From Cyanophora paradoxa CCMP329 (lineage: Eukaryota; Plantae; Glaucophyta), in the NCBI GenBank assembly GCA_004431415.1, contig QPMI01000408.1:496001-560000 (forward strand): a DNA stretch of 64,000 nucleotides, in the 5' to 3' direction. Shown one piece after another: positions 30,855-46,787 of this stretch. Numbering within the stretch: position 1 is the first letter of the stretch; each line of letters opens with the position of its first letter. A program made the position numbers and the translations under genes. The notes beneath the pieces were generated by a model. That model did no database searches and was not told the DNA's origin. It was given only the letters and a program-made list of their open reading frames with translations.

Positions 30855-33800
30855 ATGGTGAGCCGAGGCTTGCGTCTGCATGGCGCTGTGAATGGATAGC
30901 GAGCGTGCTGACCGCCTGCCCCCAGGAGGACGGGGATAGCCGGGTGGAGGTCCTCGTTCGGGTCAGGCCTGTCCTGAAGCGCGAGGAGGGGACGCTGACG
31001 CCGGTCGAGTGCATCGATGTGAGCCGCGCTTCTTCGCCGGCGGGGCCTGCCCGCCGCCGAATCGCACCCCTCAACCCGGGGCGCCGCAGGAGCAAACTAT
31101 ACGGGTCAACCGGAGCGGAGGGCGCACGATCGAGTGTCAGTTCGACTGGATCTTCTCCCCGCACGCCTCTCAGAGCGATGTCTACGAGCGGGTCCGAGGT
31201 GCACCGGCCCGCGGCAGCGGGCCGATGAGCGTTAGCCGACGCGCCCGGCACGCAGGCGTCGTGGACAGCGTTCTCGCTGGCTACAACGGCACCATCTTCA
31301 CCTAGTGCGCCGCTGCGCCCGACTGGCGGGCCCCAGCGCGCGTAGCTAAGGCGGGTGGCCCCGCAGCGGCCAGACCGGGACGGGCAAGACGCACACGATG
31401 TCGGGGAGCCTGTTCGCGGACGGCGAGACGCGCGGCAAGAGCTTCCGGGTGCGCTCCGCGGCCGGCACTCCGCGGAGCACGCGTCCGCCGACCCGCGCCC
31501 CCGCAGAACTACGCGTACGAGGACGCCGAGGCGCGGCCCACGCACGGGCTCATCCCGCGCGCCATGGATCAAATCTTCGGCTACATCTCCGCCACGAACA
31601 AGAGCACCGACTACGTGGCCCGCGCCTCCTACATCCAGGCGCGCCCGCGCCGCCCGCTCCTCTGGCCGGCCGCGCCGTGACCGCCCCGCAGATCTACAAC
31701 GATCAAATCTACGACCTCCTGACGGGCGTTCCCGGGGCGCTTCCGCCCCCGACGCCCCGCACCGCGAACTTCGGCTCCAGCGGGCCCCTCCGCGCCTCGG
31801 GCAGCATGAACGGGGTACCCCTACCCCCGAAGCCCCCCCTGCGGTCCGCCCCCCCCTCTCCCCTCTCCCACTCCTTCCCCCTCCGTTCGCCTCACGGCTT
31901 CCCGCAGCGGGGGCAAGGGCTCGCTCCTCGAGATTAAGGAGGACGGGTTCGGGGGCGTGTACGTCTCGGGGGCGACGCAGGTGCCGGTCTCCTCGGCCGG
32001 CGACGTGATGTCCCTGTTGGCGTACGGCGCCGGCACGCGCGCCGTGCGGCACACGGAGCTCAACGCGAACAGCAGCCGGAGCCACACGATCCTGCAGCTG
32101 AGCCTCGAGCAGTCGCACCGGGGCCAGGGCGGCACGCCGGGCCCGCGCGTCCGCTCCAAGCTGAACCTGGTGGACCTCGCCGGCTCGGAGAAGTGGCGGG
32201 ACCCCGCCGCGCCCACGCAGGCGGCGCTGAAGGACCGCCTGGCGGAGATGACGGCCATCAACTCCTCCCTCTCCGCCCTCGCCAACTGCATCTACGCCCT
32301 CGCCGAGCGAGGCCCGCCGCTTCCTTCCCCCTTCCCTTCTCTTCCCTCCGCTCCCCCTCGTCTTACCGCGCGGCAGGCCGCACGCACATCCCGTACCGAG
32401 ACTCGAAGCTCACGCGGCTGCTCCAGGCCCGCCCCGCCCCCCTCCCCGCGCCTCCCGCATCGCGTCCCCTTCCCTTCTCTCCTGACTTCGTTCGCGCAGG
32501 ACTCGCTGGGCGGCAACTCGCGGACCGTCTTCATCGCGACGGTCTCCCCCTCCGAGCTCTCCGTCGACGAGGTCCGCGTACCCCCCCCCCCCTCCTCCCC
32601 CGCTTTCAAGAGAGGAGCTGACGCGCGTGCTCTTCCGCTCTGCGCAGACGGTGGCGACGCTCAAGTTCGCAGACGTGGCGCGGCGCGTGCGGGTGCGGCC
32701 CGAGCTCAACGCCGACGGGCCCCAGGGCGCCGACCCCGCCGCCGGTGCCCCCGGCCCCGCCCGGCGCCCCCCTTCCCTTCGACCTGACGCGCGCCGGTGC
32801 GCAGTGCGGGAGCTGGCTGCGCGGCTCATGGCGCAGCAGCGGCGCGTCTACGAGGAGAAGATCTCCATGCTCACCGTGCGCCCAAAACATCTCTGCACTT
32901 TAGGCTAAATTACTCTTGAGAGATTACACTCCAGCGCCGCCCGCGCCGCCTTCCTGACCGACACGGGCCCCCGCTCGGCAGAGGGTCCTGGAGGCCGCGG
33001 AGCGGCGGGCGGCGACGGAGACGGAGCTGACCGAGTCGCTGGAGCTGGAGAACGGTCTCCTGCGGGAGCAGCTGGCGGAGGCGGCGCGGGAGGCGGCGCA
33101 GCGGCGGGACGAGGCGGAGAGCCTCCAGACGAGCCTCGAGGAGGAGCGGGCCGCCAAGGCCCGCCTCACCCGCGCCCTCCACGAGGCCCTCGCCCTCCAG
33201 GAGCAGCTCCACACGGACTTCGCGCAGGGCGCCGCCGCCGCCGCCGTCGCCGCCGCCCACGCCCGGGCGCACCCACGCACGCCCTCCGCCGCCGCCACCG
33301 CCTCCACGGCCAGCCGGGCCAGCCTGGGCGGCTACGGCGCCGACGACTCCCTCGCGGAGAGCGAGGGGCCCCTCTCGCCCGGCTCGGCCCTTCCGTCGGT
33401 GCCCTCGCGCGCCTCGGGCCTCTCGCTCTCCCTCCGGACCGAGGCCCTGCCCTCCCCGCACCCGCCCCCGACCGCCTTCTCCGCCTCGGCGTCCCTGTCC
33501 TCGGCCGCCTCCTCCTCGCTCGCCCCGCCCCGCACCTCCTCTACCGTCGCATCCGACCCGCTGCCCCTTCCCTCCCCCTCCCCGCGCACCGCCCCGGGCC
33601 CCCGCGGGCCCCGCTCCCGAGGCGCGTACGACTACGACGCCGCTATCGCCCAGTGGCGCGCCTCCCTCGCGCGCGGCGACGCGGCCGCGGGGGCGCCGGC
33701 GGGCCCTCCGGGGGCACAGGCTGCCCCCTTCGAGGCTCCCCGGGGGAGCTACGACCCCGTGCCGCCCCCGCAGCCCCGCGTCTCGGTCCGGCGGCCCTCG

Positions 33801-35063
33801 GGCGGGGCCCCGCCCACCCCGCGCTGCCCGCCCTCCCGGACACGCCTCCCTCCCCCGCTCCTCCCGCCCGCCCCCGCCCTCGCCCCGCCCCGGGCCCGCC
33901 GCCCCTCCCGCGTACCACGCCCGCCGCGCGCTGGCGTACCCCCCCGCGGGGCTGCCATCGCTGGAGGAGGAGGAGCCGCCTCCGCCTCCGCCGCAGCCGC
34001 CGCGGCAGGGCCCGGGCGCGGGCTCGGGCAAGCCCCCCGCGGGCCCGCTGCGGGCGTCGGCGGGGACGCTGGCGGAGCTGAAGGAGAAAGAGGCGGAGCT
34101 GCGCAAGGCCGTGGCCCACCTGCAGCAGGCCGCCGCCAACGCCCGCCGCTCCCGCGGCCTGGGCGGCGCATCGGGGGCCGGCGTCTCCAGCTCGGGCGAC
34201 CTGCAGAAGCTGCTGGCGCGAACGCAGGCGGCCATGGCGCAGCTCGCCGCCGTCACGGGCTCCCCGGTCGCCGAGTACCCCGCCTCGCCCCGCTCCCGCT
34301 CCGCCTCCCCGCGCGCCTCCCGGGAGGCCGGGCTGCCCCCCGGCCCCCGCCCCTCCGCTCCTCCGGGGACGGCCTCGGGAGCGCCCGGCGGCTCTCCCCG
34401 CGGGCCTCGGAGCCGGCGTGGCCGCCGGCCTCCCCGCCGCCCGCGGGAGGCCCTCCAGCGCCCGCGCCTCCCACTCGGCCTCGCCCCGCCGCCCCACGCC
34501 GCCCCGCACGCCCTCGCCCCGCGCCCCGGGCGCCCCTCCCCTCCGCGCCCCGCACCGCCGGCCGCCGCGGCGCGCGGCGCGCCGGCGGCGGCGGGCGCGT
34601 GGCGGGGGCGGCGGCGGCGCCCTCGGCCGCCGCCGCGAGCTCGAAGGCGCCCGTGGGCTCCATGATCTACGTGATGGGCACCAGCCGCTCCTCCCTCGCT
34701 GCCCGCAAGGCCGCCACCTCCCCGCGGGCCCCCGCGGGCGCCCAGCCTGCCCCCGGCGCCGCCCCGTCCCCCCGCCCTATCTCCATCGCGCCCATCGCGC
34801 CCATCGCAGACGCCGCCCGACTGTACCAGCAGGCAGCGGCCGCGGCCGCGGCCGCCGCCTCCCCGCAGTACTACCCCCCGTTCCCGCCCGCGCAGCCCGC
34901 GTACCCCTCCTACCCCCCCGCGGCCACGTACCCCTACCCGTCCGCGCCCGTCGCGTACCCCCCTCCCCCGCCGGAGTCGTGGGGGTCGCAGTCGGGCGGC
35001 TTCTGGCCCCCGATCGCGGCCTCCCCGCGGGCCCCTCCCCGGCCTCCCGTTCAGGGCTGGTAG
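30855..35063 (+). CDS. N-terminal-motor kinesin with coiled coil and Pro/Ala-rich tail
   Basis: VRVRP, GYNGTIFTY|GQTGTGKTHTM, NANSSRSH, LNLVDLAGSE, HIPYRDSKLTRLLQ|DSLGGN; reading frame of the tail uncertain. Confidence 0.92.
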
Positions 35064-35243
35064 CAGCGAAAGCCTTGTTTCATTGCAAGACAAAGGAAAT
35101 GATGAATATCTCGACTACAAGCTTGAGCGTCAGAGGTGGCGCGAAGCAACTTGGCAAGCTTGAGCCTAAATGTACTAGAATAACAGGGCGAAAATGCAGG
35201 CAGAAGGTCTATCGCCGAACACTGCTATGGCGCTTCGGCGCCA

Positions 35244-38200
35244 TCAGGATTGCGGAGCCCGACGGAGTTTCTTGGTAGGGTTGGAGGGGCCCGCGTCGCC
35301 GTCGTCCGAGGTCGTAGGTTGCCGCTTGTGACTGTGGTCTTCCAAACTTAAACCGGCATCTGAGTCTGCGGAACGAGTAAGCGGGAGGAGGACTGAGTCT
35401 ACAGAGAGTGGGCGAGAGGAGCAGGGCAAAACCGCACAAGCGCTGCGGTTGCTCCGAGTGCGTGTCGAGAGCCCTTCTGCAGTGGGATCAGCAAGCGGGA
35501 AAGCGAGGTACAGCGAGATGAGGCCCTTGCCTGTCATTTCATTCTCGATAAGCTGCTCTCTCGTCAGGCGCTGTAGCAGACATGTCAGATATTGTGGGAT
35601 GAGGGTGGATGGGGCGCGGGACGCACGGGACGGGGCGCAACAGCGGCAGCGGGGGCGGCCACCACAGGAACGGCAGGGGCAGCCACTACAGGAGCGGCGG
35701 CAGGGCCCGAGGCGGTCGCGCTGGGTGCAGGGGCGAGAGGCGCAGGGATGCTGGTGCCGGGCGCGGGCTCGGACTCGTCGTCATCGTCGATCCAGACCCC
35801 CTCATCGGACCCCTCGTCGCTCTCGACGGGGGCCACCTCGTCGCCGGCCATGACGGGCGTGATGCCCAGCGCCTCGTGGCACTCCTTCCGCACCTCGCGG
35901 ATCTTCTCATCGCCTGCCGCTTCGCCCCCCAGGCTGCGGGCACGAGGACGCTAAGCGGCACCCTTCGCAGCGGGGCGTAGCGCGGCACGGACTTTGCGAT
36001 GATGCCCGTGGCGAAGTTGAAGAGGCCGAGGCCCACATAGTAGGCCCGGCAGAAGCGTGCAAGCCCAGCGCTCCCAAAGCGGGCCTCAGCGGCTTCGCGG
36101 CTCCTGGAGGGGTTTCAGGCGGGCGGCGGGGAGCGCGAGGAGGCAGCATGTCGCACGAAGAGAGCTCATCGGCGTGCTTGCGAAAGAGGTCCACGGCAGG
36201 CCTGCGGTAGGCCTGGAATACCTTCTGCCCCTGCTCGATAATCTGCCGCGCTATCAGCCGAGGCCGCTGCGACCGGGGCCGATACACAGCGCACGGAGGT
36301 TCGCATCTCATCGAAGACGTGGCCCCGAACGCCTTTGATTGCGAGCTTGTTCGCCTGTGAAGAGGCTGTCGTCTGCCGGGTGCGCGTACTGGCGCCCGCG
36401 TTCTGGGCACGCGGGTCTGCATCTTTTCCCTGCACAACCTAGTCGGTAACAAAACGAGCTGGGCGGAAAGGGATTGGAACCTGGATCTTGGCCCCGCCCA
36501 AGAGGACTCGGCGAAACCCCGCCTGCAAATCCTTCTCCTGCGCAGCACCTTGGCCCATCAGCTACCAGAGTACAATGCTGCCATACACAGGGACGCACGG
36601 TATACGGCTTGAATTTGGCGGAGCCGGGCTTGTCCACAGGGACGGGGTCGAGCTGTAGATGAGGAGCTCAGGGGCGCGCAGAGGAAGCAGCGGTCGCCTT
36701 ACCAGGGGGATGTGCTTGAGGGTTTCCATTAACTTCAAAGAGACTCCTGTTGCTGCATCGGGCATCCTGATGACTGGGCTCAGCTGCCAGTTTCAATCCG
36801 GCACCCCAAGGAGTTCGCACTTCGAATGCAGGGCCCCGGCGCGCTTGAACAGGTCCACTTTAGCCTGCCTGCGCCACGCCAGACCTGTCATGCAAGAGAA
36901 CGGCGCGGCGGTAGCAGCAGCTGATTCACGCACGTGTGGTAGTACCAGCGGAGGAATTTGCCGGAGAAGCGATCCCAGAGCTTGGAATACGCATCGTCAT
37001 CCTGGGCGAATTGAGGGATCGCCACGTTCTGAAAATCAAATGAGCAATCCAGCAGGCAGCAGCTAGGACTCGCGGGGCGGGCGAGACCTCGAAGGCAGTG
37101 TCGAGCCGTGTAAGGAGGGTCTTGGTGTCGTCCCGGACCCAGCTGAGGATGCCACGCCCGACCTCCCCGTCCCGACTGAAGAGCCGCTCGGTGATGACAT
37201 CCAGGGTCCCGAGCACCAGGTACGCCGCCTGCACGCGCACTCAGGCGGGGCTGGGGCAGCATGTGAGTGCAGGGACGCACGGGATCGTAAATGTATAGAT
37301 TCACGGTGTCCCAGCAATCGCGCAGCTTGCTCGAGCTCATGAGCGCCGAGACCCCCTGCACGGCGAAAAGCGTGAGCTGGACGTTGCCTCCCCCCCCTCC
37401 CCCCCCTTCCCCCCCCTTCCCCCCCTCCCCCCCCTCCCCCCTCCCCCCCCCTCCCCCCCCTCTCCCCCCCTCCCCCTCCCCCCCTCCCCTTCCCCCCCTC
37501 CCCCGCCCCGTTGCCCCCGGGGGGTACATGTCCACGACTCACGTCACCGTCGGTGTCCCAGCGCTGGGTGAAGGCCTCGTCGGAGAGGGTGCTTGCGACA
37601 TCAGCCGCAGCCTTCTCAAAGAGGTCTTGCAGCTCGCCAGGAAGCATCTTTGACTCCTCCTCGAGATCTTTCGCTAACTCCTCCAGGCGCGGGCCAGTGA
37701 GCTCGCGCGCTGCCGCCCAGCAGGAGTCCTGCACGTCCTCCGGAAAGCACTTGAGCTCGAAAAGGGTGACGGCCTGCAGGACGCGACTTCAAAATGAAAC
37801 GAGACAGATTCAAAAGGCCTTCAAACCAACGCACCGGGCCAACGGCCTCCGTCAGCGGGGTGACAACTTCGCTCTGGAGGGTCCTGAGGGCAGCCTGAGC
37901 GCGCGTGGCGCGCGGGGCGACTCCCAGCCTGAGCGCCGCCTCCCAGAGGCGGTCCAGCCTGCAAGATTGCTCAGTGATGGGCCTGGGGCGCAGGCAGGAC
38001 GGCTCGGCACCAGGTGTCGTCGCTCCAGGAGCCGCCGGTGACAGTGAGGTGCTTCATGATCATGTTCACGTGGCCTTCCGACGCCGCCAGGTGGCCGTCT
38101 GTCAAGCTACAACGCACCCACTGCCGGAACCCTTTTGGATTGTAGATGAGCTTCTGGAGCTGCGCGTGGCGTGTGTAAGATCTCGCGCAGCAGTGAAAGA

Positions 38201-41200
38201 GAGAAGCAAAAGCACCGAATTCCTGATGTGCCCAATGTTGTGCTCATTGCCACCGCCGTGCACAGGATTGAAGACGACGACGAGCGGGGTCTTGAGGGCA
38301 ATAAAGTCGAGCCAGACCTTGGAGGGGGGCAGTCCCTGGACGTTGTCTCCAACCAGCAGTGACCGCACCTGCGAGGCGTTGTAACTGTATGCGTTCGAGG
38401 CGTTGGTGGGACAGGGGAAGGCAGCAACGAACATCGTCACCGCAGCCACTCTTTGCCTGAATTACGATGAAGCCTACATCAGCTTCGCGCCGTGCGGCCC
38501 TCGCAACGAGAGACCGCTGGAAGGGCGTCAGGTCTTTGTGGATGCCCTGTGCGGACAGCGTGAGGAGCACGAAAGGACGTCAGAATGAAGACTGGTGGGC
38601 GTACTGGCGCGCTCAGGAAGACAAGCTCAGGAAGGTTCGGCGGGAGGCAGAGTGGCACTTCAAAAACGACAGGGTCTTCGTCCGGATTCTCAGGGTCGTT
38701 GAGAAGTCCTGGCTGCTCCATCGTGGCCCTGCAACAGGATAAGAACACGGACGACAGGAGCAGGCACCACTGCGCTACCGCACAGGATGGCAGTGTTGCG
38801 GAGCCCGAAGAAGGCCAGGGTCGCGCTAGGCGCGTAGATGTTGAAGCGCTGAACCGACCCAAGGACTTTCTGGACGCTTTCCGTGATCACAAGTTTCTCT
38901 GACATCGACCTGAATTCAGTGCATGCTGGGGACATTGACCAAATCAAAGTAAGATGCTCACTGGGGTTGAGGTTGAAGGCGAGGGCGTTGTTCGTCTCGG
39001 CCTGCGTCAGGCCGAAGGTCGGCCCGACCTGCGCGGAACGTGAGGGTGGAAAGGGGGTGGGAAGGGGTGTGGGACCTCGCTCGCGACGAGGTCAGATTCT
39101 GGTAGGGCGTCCTCCGGCTCCTGCTCGTCCCCCTCAGCAGCCCGGAGCTGCTCCTGCTGCTTCTTTCGCTCGTCCAGCTCAGTGAACTTCTCTCTCAGCC
39201 GCAGCGCTCCCTGCGCGGAGCGCCGCCGGATCTGCAGTGCCGCCGTGCCAACCGTGCTCCGCACGACCTGCCCCATCGAGTAAGGCAAGAGGGCAGATCT
39301 CGGAAAGAAGGCAGCTCTCAGAGGCAGGCAGAAGACACCTCGTGAAGCCAGGTAGTGTTATCCGCCGTGCTGCAAGGGAGCATGCCTTGTGTGAGCTTGA
39401 ATTGCCCCCAGTCTTCGGGTTCCATCTCGGGGAGGGGCTGGCTGATCCAGTCCTTTGCCGCGTTCTTGAGGGCGCTGAGGCCGCTTTCGCCCTTGGTCTT
39501 CCGCGCCATCAACTTCGCCTTCTGCGATGCCTTGCCCTCGCCCTTGGCCTTGGCCTTCGGTGGCGACAGTTTCTTGCACGCCGCCTCCCGCGTCTTCGCG
39601 TCCTCCCAGTAACGCAGCGTCTCGACCTGAAGCGAAGGTAAGTGAGGCGGGCAAAGTTTTCGGGGGCTTCAATGCGCGCGTACCTTGATAATCGGCTGAA
39701 AGCGAGTGGGGTCTGCGGTCGGCGAAACCACAAGGCGGCGTTCACCAGCGTCATCCTCAGGCCCCACTACGATGGCGGGCCCCTCAGGACTATCCCGGCG
39801 GAGCTCAATGTACACAGGAGTGTCTCCGGGACCCGTCACCAGCACAGCAACGAGGCAGAGACCCGCAGCCTAAGCGTGCACGGTCAGAGAAAGAATGGCC
39901 TTTATAACATAAGAAGATCGGGTCCCTCACCAAGGGAACAGGGCAGACCAAAGGCCGCGCGCCGTCGGAGCTGGAGGTCTCGCTGACGCCGATAAGAGAG
40001 GGTGTTTCTTGGTCGGGGGCATGGAAACGACCCTCCGGCATCGCGGTCGCCTGCATGTAGAAGCCAAATTGCGCCACTGAAGCATCGGCAGGGTGAATGC
40101 GCCAGTTTGATGTGCCCCTGGAAAGGAGCCGGTGCGACGATGGGTCCTGGACTGGCTTGGAGAGGTCGGTGTGCGCAAGGTGTACCTTTATAATCGTCAG
40201 AAACACAATTCATAAAAGGTGACAGAGAAGCAAGAGCACGCACGTAACCCGTGCCGTCCGGCTCGACGAGGCTGAGGCTGGTCAGCGTTTGCGGTTTGCG
40301 ACCTTCTGACTTGTCCGAGCCTGTCACCGACCCTTCCTTGGTCGCACTGTCTAGGATTGCGAGCTGCGAGCAGAGAGTCAGCATAGCTCTGGCGACGAGG
40401 AGAAAGCAAGGGCCTAGACCTGGAGGAAGATCTGCATGTCCGGCATGTAATCAGGGACGAAGTTTAATTTATATCTCTTCACGCCGTCAACCTCCTGTTC
40501 AAACATCATATCTCAGAAAAAGAAAAAGAAAAAGAAAGGAAGGGGGCGCACCGAGTGCAGTTCGCCAAAGCGTGTGATAAGACAATCGACGAAGTGGCTG
40601 TCGGGACAGGCCTTGTGCTCCAGGATGGCTCCCGCGATGGTTGACTTGCCTGCACAGGTGCACCTTTAATGGCGTGAACGCACTGTAAAGGCGATGGATC
40701 AATTACCTGTGCCGTTCAGGCCAAGGAAGGACACACACAAGCGGCGGGCCTCGGTAAGGGCTTTGTTGGCGACGTCCAGGTCGATCTCCTGCAACAGTGC
40801 TAGCTGTTTGGCTTGGGCTGCTGTCAGGGACCCGCGACGGAGTTCGTTGATGAGTCGTTCGGCAAAGTTGTGGGCAAGTTCCACAGTGTCGTCGTTTGGC
40901 TGGTTCTGAAGCGCGCGCGTCACCGCCTCAATGAGTTCCGTCCTCATCGCTTGTCCCGAAGGAACAGGCCCATCCAAAGGAGATTTGAACATCATGCTCT
41001 CGTCGAGCATTTCGCCATGTTCGTTTTCTTGATCGCCGCCTGAGCCTGCTGTAGCTGGAGCTGCACTTGAAGAGCTAGCTGGCACAATATTGACTTCCCC
41101 GTTGGTGGCTGGAGCCATGGCCGGGAAGTTCAACCCCAGCATACTGCCCCCTGCAATCGGTTGGTGGTAAGAATGCGAAGAAGGAAGGAAGAAGGAAGGC

Positions 41201-41609
41201 GAACTGCAGGGCGCACCAGAGCGGGCGCCGCAGCGCTCGCATGGGCAAACAGGATAACCATCTGGAAGTTTTGTACATCCGGCAACTATGCAAAGGCGAG
41301 GTTGCGTTGGAACCAGCTCCCCAAGCTTCTTCGCGTCCTTGATGCCCGCGGTGCTGAGATCCTTGACAAACTCGGGTCCGTGGTGCTTGCGCACGCATGG
41401 CGTACAGAAGAAGTGCGCGTGTTTACGCCGCGAGCATTGAAAAGCATGCTGGCCGTTGACGACCTGCCCGCTGCGCATGCGGTTTGTTCCTTAGCGCTCA
41501 GGACGAACTCCGGCATGCGATCGCACCAGGCGTGACACTTCTTAACTCGAATGCCATTCTTCGATAGCTTGGCGGAGACAAGCGTGCTCTGCTTGGCTTT
41601 TCGGGCCAT
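35244..41609 (-). CDS. large multi-exon protein: zf-4CXXC_R1-like zinc finger + divergent dynamin-like P-loop GTPase + helical C-terminus
   Basis: Spliced CHAC..C..HAHFFCTPC..CPCERC; VSFLGLNGTG|KST (intron 40706-40650); MLPCSTADNTTWLHE; LVFLSAP|G; LVVVFNPVH; C-terminal PTKKLRR; may start further upstream. Confidence 0.68.
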
Positions 41610-45273: not shown

Positions 45274-46787
45274 CTAGGGCTTGAACAGGTCGTCGATGAA
45301 CTTGCGGGCGCGGCCGGCGGCGGCCCCCAGCGCGCGCTGCCGCGCCTCTTCAGCGCGCCGGCGCCGCAGCTCCCGGAGGGCGTTCCAGCCGAACGCGTAG
45401 ACGAGCCCGCCCGCCAGGCCGCCCACGTGCGCCGTGTTGTCCTGCGCGCAGCGAGGCGCCGTCAGCGAGGGCCGCGGGGGGGTCTCGAGGGCGCCGAGCG
45501 CGGCGGACCACGCTTATCGAAGAGAACCCGAAGAGGAGGTTCATGCCGATCGAGCTGAGAGGGGTTCAGCTTACTTCGAATTCGAAAGTCGACGAGGAGC
45601 AGAGGGCGGGGGCACCGGAGGAGCGAGTCCGTGAGGCCGCGCGTCCATATGCCGATGCGCCGCTCGTTCAGCTTCACGGCGAGGAACACCGAGCCTGGGA
45701 GGATAGCGGACAAGGGACGAGTGAGGCGCGGGGCCGGGTGCGAGGGCGGCGCCCCGCGCCCAGACGCACCGATGCAGCCGAAGATGGCGCCCGAGGCACC
45801 GATGGACGGGTGCACGTTGAAGCGGAAGCTCGCCACGTTGCCGGCGACGCCTGCGGGGCGGCGGCGACGGTCGACGTCAGCCGGACGCGCGGCGCCGGGC
45901 TCGCAGCGCCGAGCGACCGCACCGGAGAGAAGGTACATCCAGAGGAAGTTGCCGTGCCCCAGGATGCCCTCGGCGACCGGCCCGATGTTGAGGAGCGACA
46001 TCGAGTTGACGAACAGGTGCGAGATGCTCCCGTGGAAGAAGACGGGCGAGATGAGGCGCCACCACTCGCCGCGCGCGATGGCGAGGTTGTCCTTCTTGTA
46101 GAGGTCGAGCAGCCGGGGGCCCGCGCGCTTCGCCATCACCGTGTACGTGTAGACCGCGATGTTGAGCACGACGAGCGCCTGCGTCACGTAGGGCGTCCGG
46201 TGCAGCCCGCTGAAGTCGAAGCCGTCCTGCATGCTCGGGAAGCGCAGGCTCCTGCTGCGGGACCGGAAGCTGGGGAGACCCCGCAGGCGGAAGCCCAGTC
46301 GGGGAATGCGCTTCGTCGAGAGCAAAGCCGTGAGCTGGGACCAGAGCGGTGGCTGCGATCCGGGCTGCTCATCCTCGGAGTTGTCGTCGTCCCTCCGGCG
46401 CCGGCGGCCGGGCGGGAGGCGCGGCGGCGGCGGCGGCGCGATGCCGGCATTCTCCTCCTTGATCGATCTCTTGACGTTCTGCCGCAGCTCCTTGAAGGCC
46501 GGGTTGGGCTGAAGGAGCTTAGACAGCACGCGGTCAACCGCGCCCTCGCCAGACGGCACGTCGCGGCTCCTGCCGCGCCGCTTGTTGGGCTGCGTCCGCT
46601 TATTCCTGGGCGCACCATCACCGCCCGCAAGCCACAGGATCGGCGCACGGCAGGCTGGCCGACAGCGCTGCTCGGCCGGTCGGTGCTGGGGGCATACGCG
46701 TCCGCGCTGAATAAGTGGATGCGGCGATGATAGCAAGGCGGCCCCCGGGGGCGCCGCGGCGAAGCAGACGAAGAGCGCGGGTGCCAT
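45274..46787 (-). CDS. rhomboid intramembrane serine protease with transit-peptide-like leader
   Basis: GEWWRLISPVFFHGSISHLFVNS, GASGAIFG (catalytic Ser), DNTAHVGG (catalytic His). Confidence 0.92.

Follow-up and report, generated by a model that had tools for sequence, protein, structure and literature searches.

The DNA analysed here is a 64,000-nucleotide (nt) stretch of the Cyanophora paradoxa CCMP329 genome (contig QPMI01000408.1), hereafter the window, in whose coordinates all positions are given. At positions 35244-41609, an earlier note made from the sequence had placed a zinc-finger-fused, divergent dynamin-like GTPase hidden by introns. These limits coincide exactly with the start codon of one annotated gene, g10621, and the stop codon of another, g10620. 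The corresponding EukProt models are tig00020553_g10620.t1, which encodes a protein of 1301 amino acids (P0001), and g10621.t1, which encodes a zinc finger of 101 amino acids (P0002). Both proteins were singletons in the database. All gene features described below lie on the minus strand, and motif coordinates were verified by translation. On balance, we lean towards reading the locus as one lineage-specific, intron-rich gene whose product is a large P-loop nucleoside triphosphatase (NTPase) of the dynamin-like class, though a very divergent one.

P0001 is encoded by 30 exons running from 40947 to 35247. Its 29 introns have GT-AG borders in 28 cases and GC-AG borders in one; 27 of the GT-AG introns are 47-72 nt long, and one measures 187 nt. 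A G+C (GC) content of 67.6% and numerous short introns, with a mean length of 86 bp, were reported for the Cyanophora genome as a whole (PMC6704402). Exons rebuilt by hand, with GT-AG introns of approximately 50-70 nt, agreed with the published model except at two junctions, where the published choice was adopted. A hand-called intron of 97 nt after ADVGFI and an unspliced exon 9 were replaced by the junctions of the published model. The manual splicing behind the earlier note also matched g10620 nearly exon for exon, including the 57-nt intron in the P-loop. The GC content of the P0001 exons by codon position was 0.66/0.47/0.76, which is a coding signature. The window as a whole is GC-rich, and as had been noticed before, the locus is poorer in GC than its neighbours (0.56-0.64 across 36-42 kb of the window versus 0.74-0.77 in both flanks). 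The locus is a real gene. It does contain many introns, but calling it hidden by them was an overstatement, because the gene was already present in the 2019 annotation, although without any domain call. A tblastn search found no paralogue of P0001 in the remainder of the window, and no internal repeats were found in P0001.

The 187-nt intron (37356-37542, minus strand) consists mostly of a microsatellite that is G-rich on the coding strand, in which runs of 5-10 G are parted by A (66% G). It is a candidate for G-quadruplex formation in the pre-mRNA.

Whether the finger and the NTPase belong to one gene was assessed from the reading frame and the splice sites. One open frame of 263 codons takes in both the finger exon and the first exon of P0001, and the linker that joins the finger to the annotated g10620 start (Table 1) stays open in this frame. 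The 28 GT-AG introns of the gene itself supplied the matrix for scoring splice sites, and the median scores of real sites were 5.2 (donor) and 6.2 (acceptor). By this measure the linker contains a strong, likely real 66-nt intron, and since its length is a multiple of three, the frame of the finger and the NTPase is kept. Two observations count against fusion. The published annotation, which comes from a BRAKER1 run with RNA-seq hints, has two separate gene models, and the linker lacks the codon bias of the gene, as measured by GC content at third codon positions (GC3). It should be noted that the authors of the annotation state that their models require manual curation (PMC6704402). On the two-gene view, g10621 would encode a finger protein of 101 residues, and g10620 a dynamin-like protein of 1301 residues that has no finger and starts at Met 40947; the frame-shifting 52-nt intron that ends the g10621 model has usable though weak sites. 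However, after this intron P0002 continues through two very short exons, of 15 and 6 residues, in a different frame, with a stop at 41133. The distance from this stop to the ATG of g10620 is only 186 nt, against an average of 770 bp between genes in the Cyanophora genome (PMC6704402). Without the one weak splice, the finger frame continues directly into the P-loop exon, and a second Cys cluster lies in the finger frame just beyond the donor of the proposed 52-nt intron. We therefore regard the two-gene arrangement as rather unlikely, and the finger and the NTPase as probably fused in one gene, as the earlier note had proposed. Most likely, g10621 and g10620 form one transcription unit that was split by the gene predictor.

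The nucleotide-binding motifs of P0001 were compared with residues invariant in a 14-sequence dynamin alignment, namely G-K-S in G1, Thr103 in G2, D-x-P-G in G3 and N-K-x-D in G4. The G1 (Walker A) motif GLNGTGKST is intact and is split by the 57-nt intron just as had been described. For G2, the earlier note had pointed to LPCSTADNTT. This motif is present, but it was rejected as G2 because it lies about 325 residues past the P-loop, within the long insert between G2 and G3. Thr106 fits far better as a candidate, being 24 residues past Lys82, and may be compared with the invariant Thr103 that follows Lys82 in bacterial dynamins, although Thr106 itself lies outside the alignments. Approximately 500 residues past Walker A there is a hydrophobic strand with xxPG, and a second strand ending in Asn lies about 74 residues further. 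The distance from G1 to G3 is thus about 500 residues, which does not agree with the insert of 250-300 residues estimated before.

The predicted motifs LVFLSAPG, ADVGFIV and NPVH were all found, each with a qualification. The LSAPG part of LVFLSAPG was aligned to DTPG by both hmmsearch and hhalign, and it keeps the Pro and Gly of G3; the invariant Asp, however, is replaced by Ser, so that the motif reads SAPG rather than DxxG. After ADVGFIV, the published model retains 11 further residues. NPVH does end a hydrophobic strand at the G4 position, but only the Asn of NKxD is kept, and the invariant Lys and Asp are missing. In Ras-like GTPases, the Asp of G3 helps to hold magnesium and the Asp of G4 reads guanine. 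With SAPG in place of DxxG and NPVH in place of NKxD, GTPase activity is doubtful, and the protein may bind nucleotide without fast or guanine-specific hydrolysis.

An alternative AAG acceptor occurs at 40664 within the P-loop intron. It scored 2.0, below the acceptor used; splicing there would leave an extra 14 nt in the transcript, put it out of frame and abolish GKST.

The assignment to the dynamin-like class draws on one kind of evidence, protein language-model similarity, together with the architecture of the protein. For the whole of P0001, ESM-atlas features gave values of 0.94-0.96 with 177-197 features shared, and the named neighbours listed were all Dynamin_N, MMR_HSR1 or DUF7605 proteins, including SLIP-GC-like ones. 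Residues 540-1135, which exclude the P-loop, again retrieved dynamin-family and SLIP-GC-like clusters (0.93-0.94, language-model features). By language-model features, the clusters nearest to P0001, both whole and P-loop-free, were SLIP-GC/NUGGC-like proteins and fungal Dynamin_N + DUF7605 proteins. NUGGC has been described as nuclear. These proteins are large and combine a dynamin-type G domain with a long C-terminal region, an arrangement that P0001 probably shares. However, there is no similarity to them at the level of hidden Markov models (HMMs), and P0001 differs in its non-canonical G3 and G4, its insert of about 400 residues and its possible N-terminal finger.

The layout of P0001 comprises about 70 helical residues (AlphaFold2 (AF2) prediction, low confidence), a P-loop with Lys82, an alternation of strands and helices around G3 and G4, and about 640 more residues. 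This layout favours the dynamin-like class over the ABC/SMC type. It also resembles that of bacterial dynamin-like proteins (RdcA/CrfC), in which about 70 helical residues are followed by a P-loop Lys that stands at position 82 in RdcA as in P0001. A Thr 21-24 residues past this Lys, an xxPG strand, the next strand and an Asn-ending strand follow in the same order. For profile comparisons, two dynamin alignments were used, containing RdcA/CrfC of E. coli and relatives from genomes and plasmids (Klebsiella, Nostoc, Bacillus, Lactococcus); a metagenome scan for the dynamin profile contributed close relatives only. With both alignments, the P-loop always fell on G1 in hmmsearch and hhalign, and LSAPG with the next strand on DTPG with its strand, in the same register. 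The matches to LeoA and LeoBC in PADLOC covered the N-terminal helices besides the P-loop. In contrast to bacterial dynamins, P0001 carries replacements of the invariant residues in G3 (Asp) and G4 (Lys and Asp), and its insert between G2 and G3 is several times longer. Its gene is eukaryotic, has 29 or more introns and has no evident partner gene.

Some bacterial dynamins act in phage defence, as in Eleos (bioRxiv 10.1101/2022.12.12.520048). The resemblance of P0001 to LeoA/LeoBC of Eleos and to the plasmid 'dynamin family' proteins consists of weak matches whose scores are not significant. Among the control loci, those from Bacillus and Lactococcus plasmids (L101:98-4390 and L102:547-5801) contain a WYL gene with two dynamin-family genes after it, and those from Nostoc plasmids (L103:2360-6062 and L104:2306-6092) contain, in this order, a dynamin gene, a YjcZ-like gene and a patatin-like phospholipase gene. 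Both kinds of plasmid locus look like defence cassettes.

Besides the departures at G3 and G4, a series of results weighs against a dynamin-like protein. Searches and folds used single exons, P0001 or parts of it, and P0002. The scores with the dynamin profiles were not significant, since 32 of 500 and 78 of 500 shuffled sequences reached the real score, and the hhalign expectation values (E) were weak (0.004-0.007 for G1 and 0.13-0.16 for G3). Pfam gave no significant match for the whole of P0001 or its sub-regions, and Dynamin_N did not match either even at E up to 10. No significant match was obtained in sequence searches of the Protein Data Bank (PDB). In PADLOC, only weak, P-loop-centred matches were found (PtuA, PbeC, LeoA and LeoBC, E 0.001-0.04), and nothing beyond the P-loop was significant. 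The single-sequence AF2 model of residues 1-780 had a predicted local distance difference test (pLDDT) score of 34, too poor for fold comparison. In addition, DUF7605 had no Pfam match in P0001, Pfam and NCBIfam searches exon by exon yielded nothing significant, BLASTP of P0001 against E. coli RdcA returned noise only, and neither the viral contigs nor an exact-protein contig look-up gave a match. The dynamin-like identity that the earlier note read from the motif order is backed by language-model neighbours, domain order and weak alignments in register, but not by significant HMM or profile scores or by the residues missing from G3 and G4.

One more result speaks against the dynamin-like assignment and for another class. 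With a control profile built from PhnC, PhnK and PhnL, hhalign aligned residues 1-180 to ABC proteins at E 1.4e-4 and a probability of 52%, better than to the dynamin profiles. The nucleotide-binding domain could accordingly be of the ABC/SMC type (PtuA of Septu, Rad50-like), with a Walker A at the front, a long insert that includes a coiled coil, and a degenerate Walker B and D-loop at LVFLSAPG..D. GxNGxGKST is the form that Walker A usually takes in ABC proteins. P0001 shares this form with ABC/SMC ATPases (PtuA, ABC_tran), as well as the residues just upstream and a long insert after Walker A. The top PADLOC match was PtuA (E about 1e-3), and Pfam ABC_tran reached E 0.027 (15.5 bits, compared with a cut-off of 25). 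By our own reading, the Ser of LSAPG stands 32 residues before the Gln at the end of the next strand, a distance like that from Walker B to the H-loop. However, no LSGGQ-type signature, Asp-Glu or His-loop histidine was found in P0001, and its second half is out of register with the ABC profile. The residues upstream of the P-loop are predicted to be helical and not strands, which is the wrong secondary structure for this class, and about 640 residues follow the putative H-loop, giving P0001 a long C-terminal region that these ATPases do not share. Furthermore, no ABC or SMC family was named among the language-model matches listed, for either the whole protein or the P-loop-free part. An ABC/SMC-type ATPase thus seems improbable to us, and the dynamin-like assignment is preferred.

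Another possible reading is that the gene is decaying or never functioned. It would then be a lineage-specific gene whose NTPase motifs are relics without a nucleotide-dependent mechanism. A HMMER search with exon 1 against 1.84 billion representatives recovered two self models only (P0001 and P0002), and word searches with exon 1, the whole of P0001 and residues 540-1135 returned self only; these searches were sensitive only for the first 80 residues of P0001, and elsewhere they would miss relatives below roughly 40-50% identity. The degenerate G3 and G4 and a GC content below that of the flanks would also agree with decay. Nevertheless, the 1301 codons remain in frame across 30 exons whose splice sites are intact, the codon-position GC signature is clear, and Walker A is intact. 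We consider a decaying gene a poor explanation for these features, and a functional dynamin-like protein a better one.

The insert between G2 and G3 had no Pfam match. It contains a strongly basic, Lys-rich patch (39575..39492) with a net charge of +10. A hydrophobic stretch of 19 residues (39834-39951, minus strand, across the intron 39930..39870) with a Kyte-Doolittle value of 2.43 also lies in this insert. It could be membrane-inserting, which would argue for membrane over chromatin association. The 'long helical region' expected after the G domain was partly borne out, in that the AF2 model has helices up to residue 780, at low confidence; the protein beyond residue 780 is outside the model. 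The C-terminal KKLRR, also predicted before, was found.

The N-terminal Cys/His finger of the earlier note is present. Removal of a 56-nt intron creates its first CxxC, and the splice sites of this intron are strong, within the range of the gene's other introns. The finger matched Pfam PHD_NSD at E 0.006 and 17.3 bits, under the cut-off of 23.9. Its AF2 model had a pLDDT of 61, and the best VIA matches of this model were the PHD finger of VIM1 (Z 3.6) and the ADD domain of ATRX (Z 2.9), both sub-threshold. Like cross-brace fingers of the PHD, ADD and RING types, the Cyanophora finger has eight Cys/His ligands, including an H-x2-C pair, and its weak structural matches comprised VIM1 PHD, the ADD domains of ATRX and DNMT3, and PHF7. 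However, its ligand spacing departs from the C4HC3 consensus of PHD fingers, with every score sub-threshold. The structural matches form a consistent theme, though not proof, and weakly suggest a PHD-like finger.

Table 1 Features of the g10621-g10620 locus in window coordinates.
Feature	Position	Strand	Description
Whole locus	35244..41609	minus	From the g10621 start codon (ATG at 41609) to the g10620 stop codon (35246..35244)
Exon 0	41527..41609	minus	Basic N-terminus, with the first finger Cys; corresponds to P0002 residues 1-27
Cys/His finger	41377..41537	minus	C-x2-C-x12-C-x4-H-x-H-x2-C-x2-C-x3-HH; candidate PHD/RING-like cross-brace
56-nt intron	41471..41526	minus	GT-AG; the first CxxC of the finger arises by its removal; position weight matrix scores: donor 8.7, acceptor 5.4
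52-nt intron of g10621	41262..41313	minus	Frame-shifting, ends the model after 101 residues; donor 3.7, acceptor 3.2
Second Cys cluster	41230..41292	minus	C-x4-C-x9-C-x-C-x2-C; would be translated only if the weak 52-nt intron stays unspliced
66-nt intron	41151..41216	minus	Likely real; frame kept; donor 8.0, acceptor 7.3
Linker	40948..41313	minus	Between the finger and the annotated g10620 start; same frame open; GC3 0.48 versus 0.76 in the other exons
G1 / Walker A, GLNGTGKST	40639..40722	minus	GLNGT 40722..40708, split Gly codon, KST 40647..40639; 57-nt GT-AG intron 40706..40650
Thr106 of P0001	40573..40575	minus	Better candidate for G2 (switch I); 24 residues past the P-loop Lys82
G2-G3 insert	38783..40363	minus	About 400 residues; hydrophobic 19-mer, basic patch, predicted long helix, LPCSTADNTT
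LPCSTADNTT	39351..39380	minus	'G2-like' motif of the earlier note, inside the G2-G3 insert
G3 position, LSAP/G	38544..38616	minus	LSAP 38616..38605, G 38546..38544; split by intron 38604..38547
ADVGFIV	38483 onward	minus	Found by translation
G4 position, NPVH	38258..38269	minus	End of a hydrophobic strand; in place of NKxD
Region after the G domain	35995..38159	minus	Candidate stalk of about 455 residues; language-model matches to dynamin families (540-1135)
Tail	35244..35932	minus	Acidic block (net charge -13), Ala/Pro-rich block, KKLRR, stop codon
GC-AG intron	35530..35477	minus	54 nt, published P0001 model; the sole non-GT-AG intron among 29
KKLRR	35259..35273	minus	Four residues before the stop codon

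Among the neighbours of the locus, just one is recognisable, an open reading frame (ORF) at 45465-46787 on the minus strand with a clear Rhomboid domain (Pfam E 9e-17). On the other side, at 32910-35093, long ORFs overlap on both strands (727 amino acids on the minus strand and 554 on the plus strand) in DNA of 74-77% GC, and they had no Pfam match. They are probably an effect of base composition, like the bidirectional ORFs discussed in the genome paper (PMC6704402).

Membrane remodelling is the known role of dynamin-like proteins, and immune functions in bacteria and animals are increasingly recognised as well. For P0001, the most likely role suggested by our analysis is that of a nucleotide-gated, self-associating dynamin-like scaffold with targeting modules. 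The intact P-loop and Thr106 would serve to bind nucleotide. Given that the Asp is missing from G3 and the Lys and Asp from G4, the protein would probably be a slow or non-guanine-specific switch and not a fast GTPase. As in dynamin-like proteins, self-association through the part of the protein beyond the G domain may be controlled by the nucleotide state. Targeting to a partner, possibly in the nucleus or a nucleic acid, could come from three elements: the PHD-like finger, the Lys-rich patch inside the protein and KKLRR at the C-terminus.

The nuclear, chromatin-targeted action put forward in the earlier note is conjecture, drawn from the weak PHD-like signal and the basic patches only. A bolder version, to which we give little credence, is that of a glaucophyte-specific dynamin-like scaffold in which canonical GTP catalysis has disappeared, while a finger that reads histones or nucleic acids and a large basic insert have been acquired. 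Such a protein would undergo nucleotide-gated assembly on chromatin or foreign nucleic acid, and would be an independently invented 'nuclear dynamin' like vertebrate SLIP-GC.

For the Cyanophora annotation, the practical outcome is that the published models g10620 and g10621 probably need merging, and that g10620 gains a tentative family. If confirmed, the protein would bring into the dynamin-like class a chromatin-type finger, a G domain with a giant insert and altered nucleotide motifs, which would widen the known uses of this fold.

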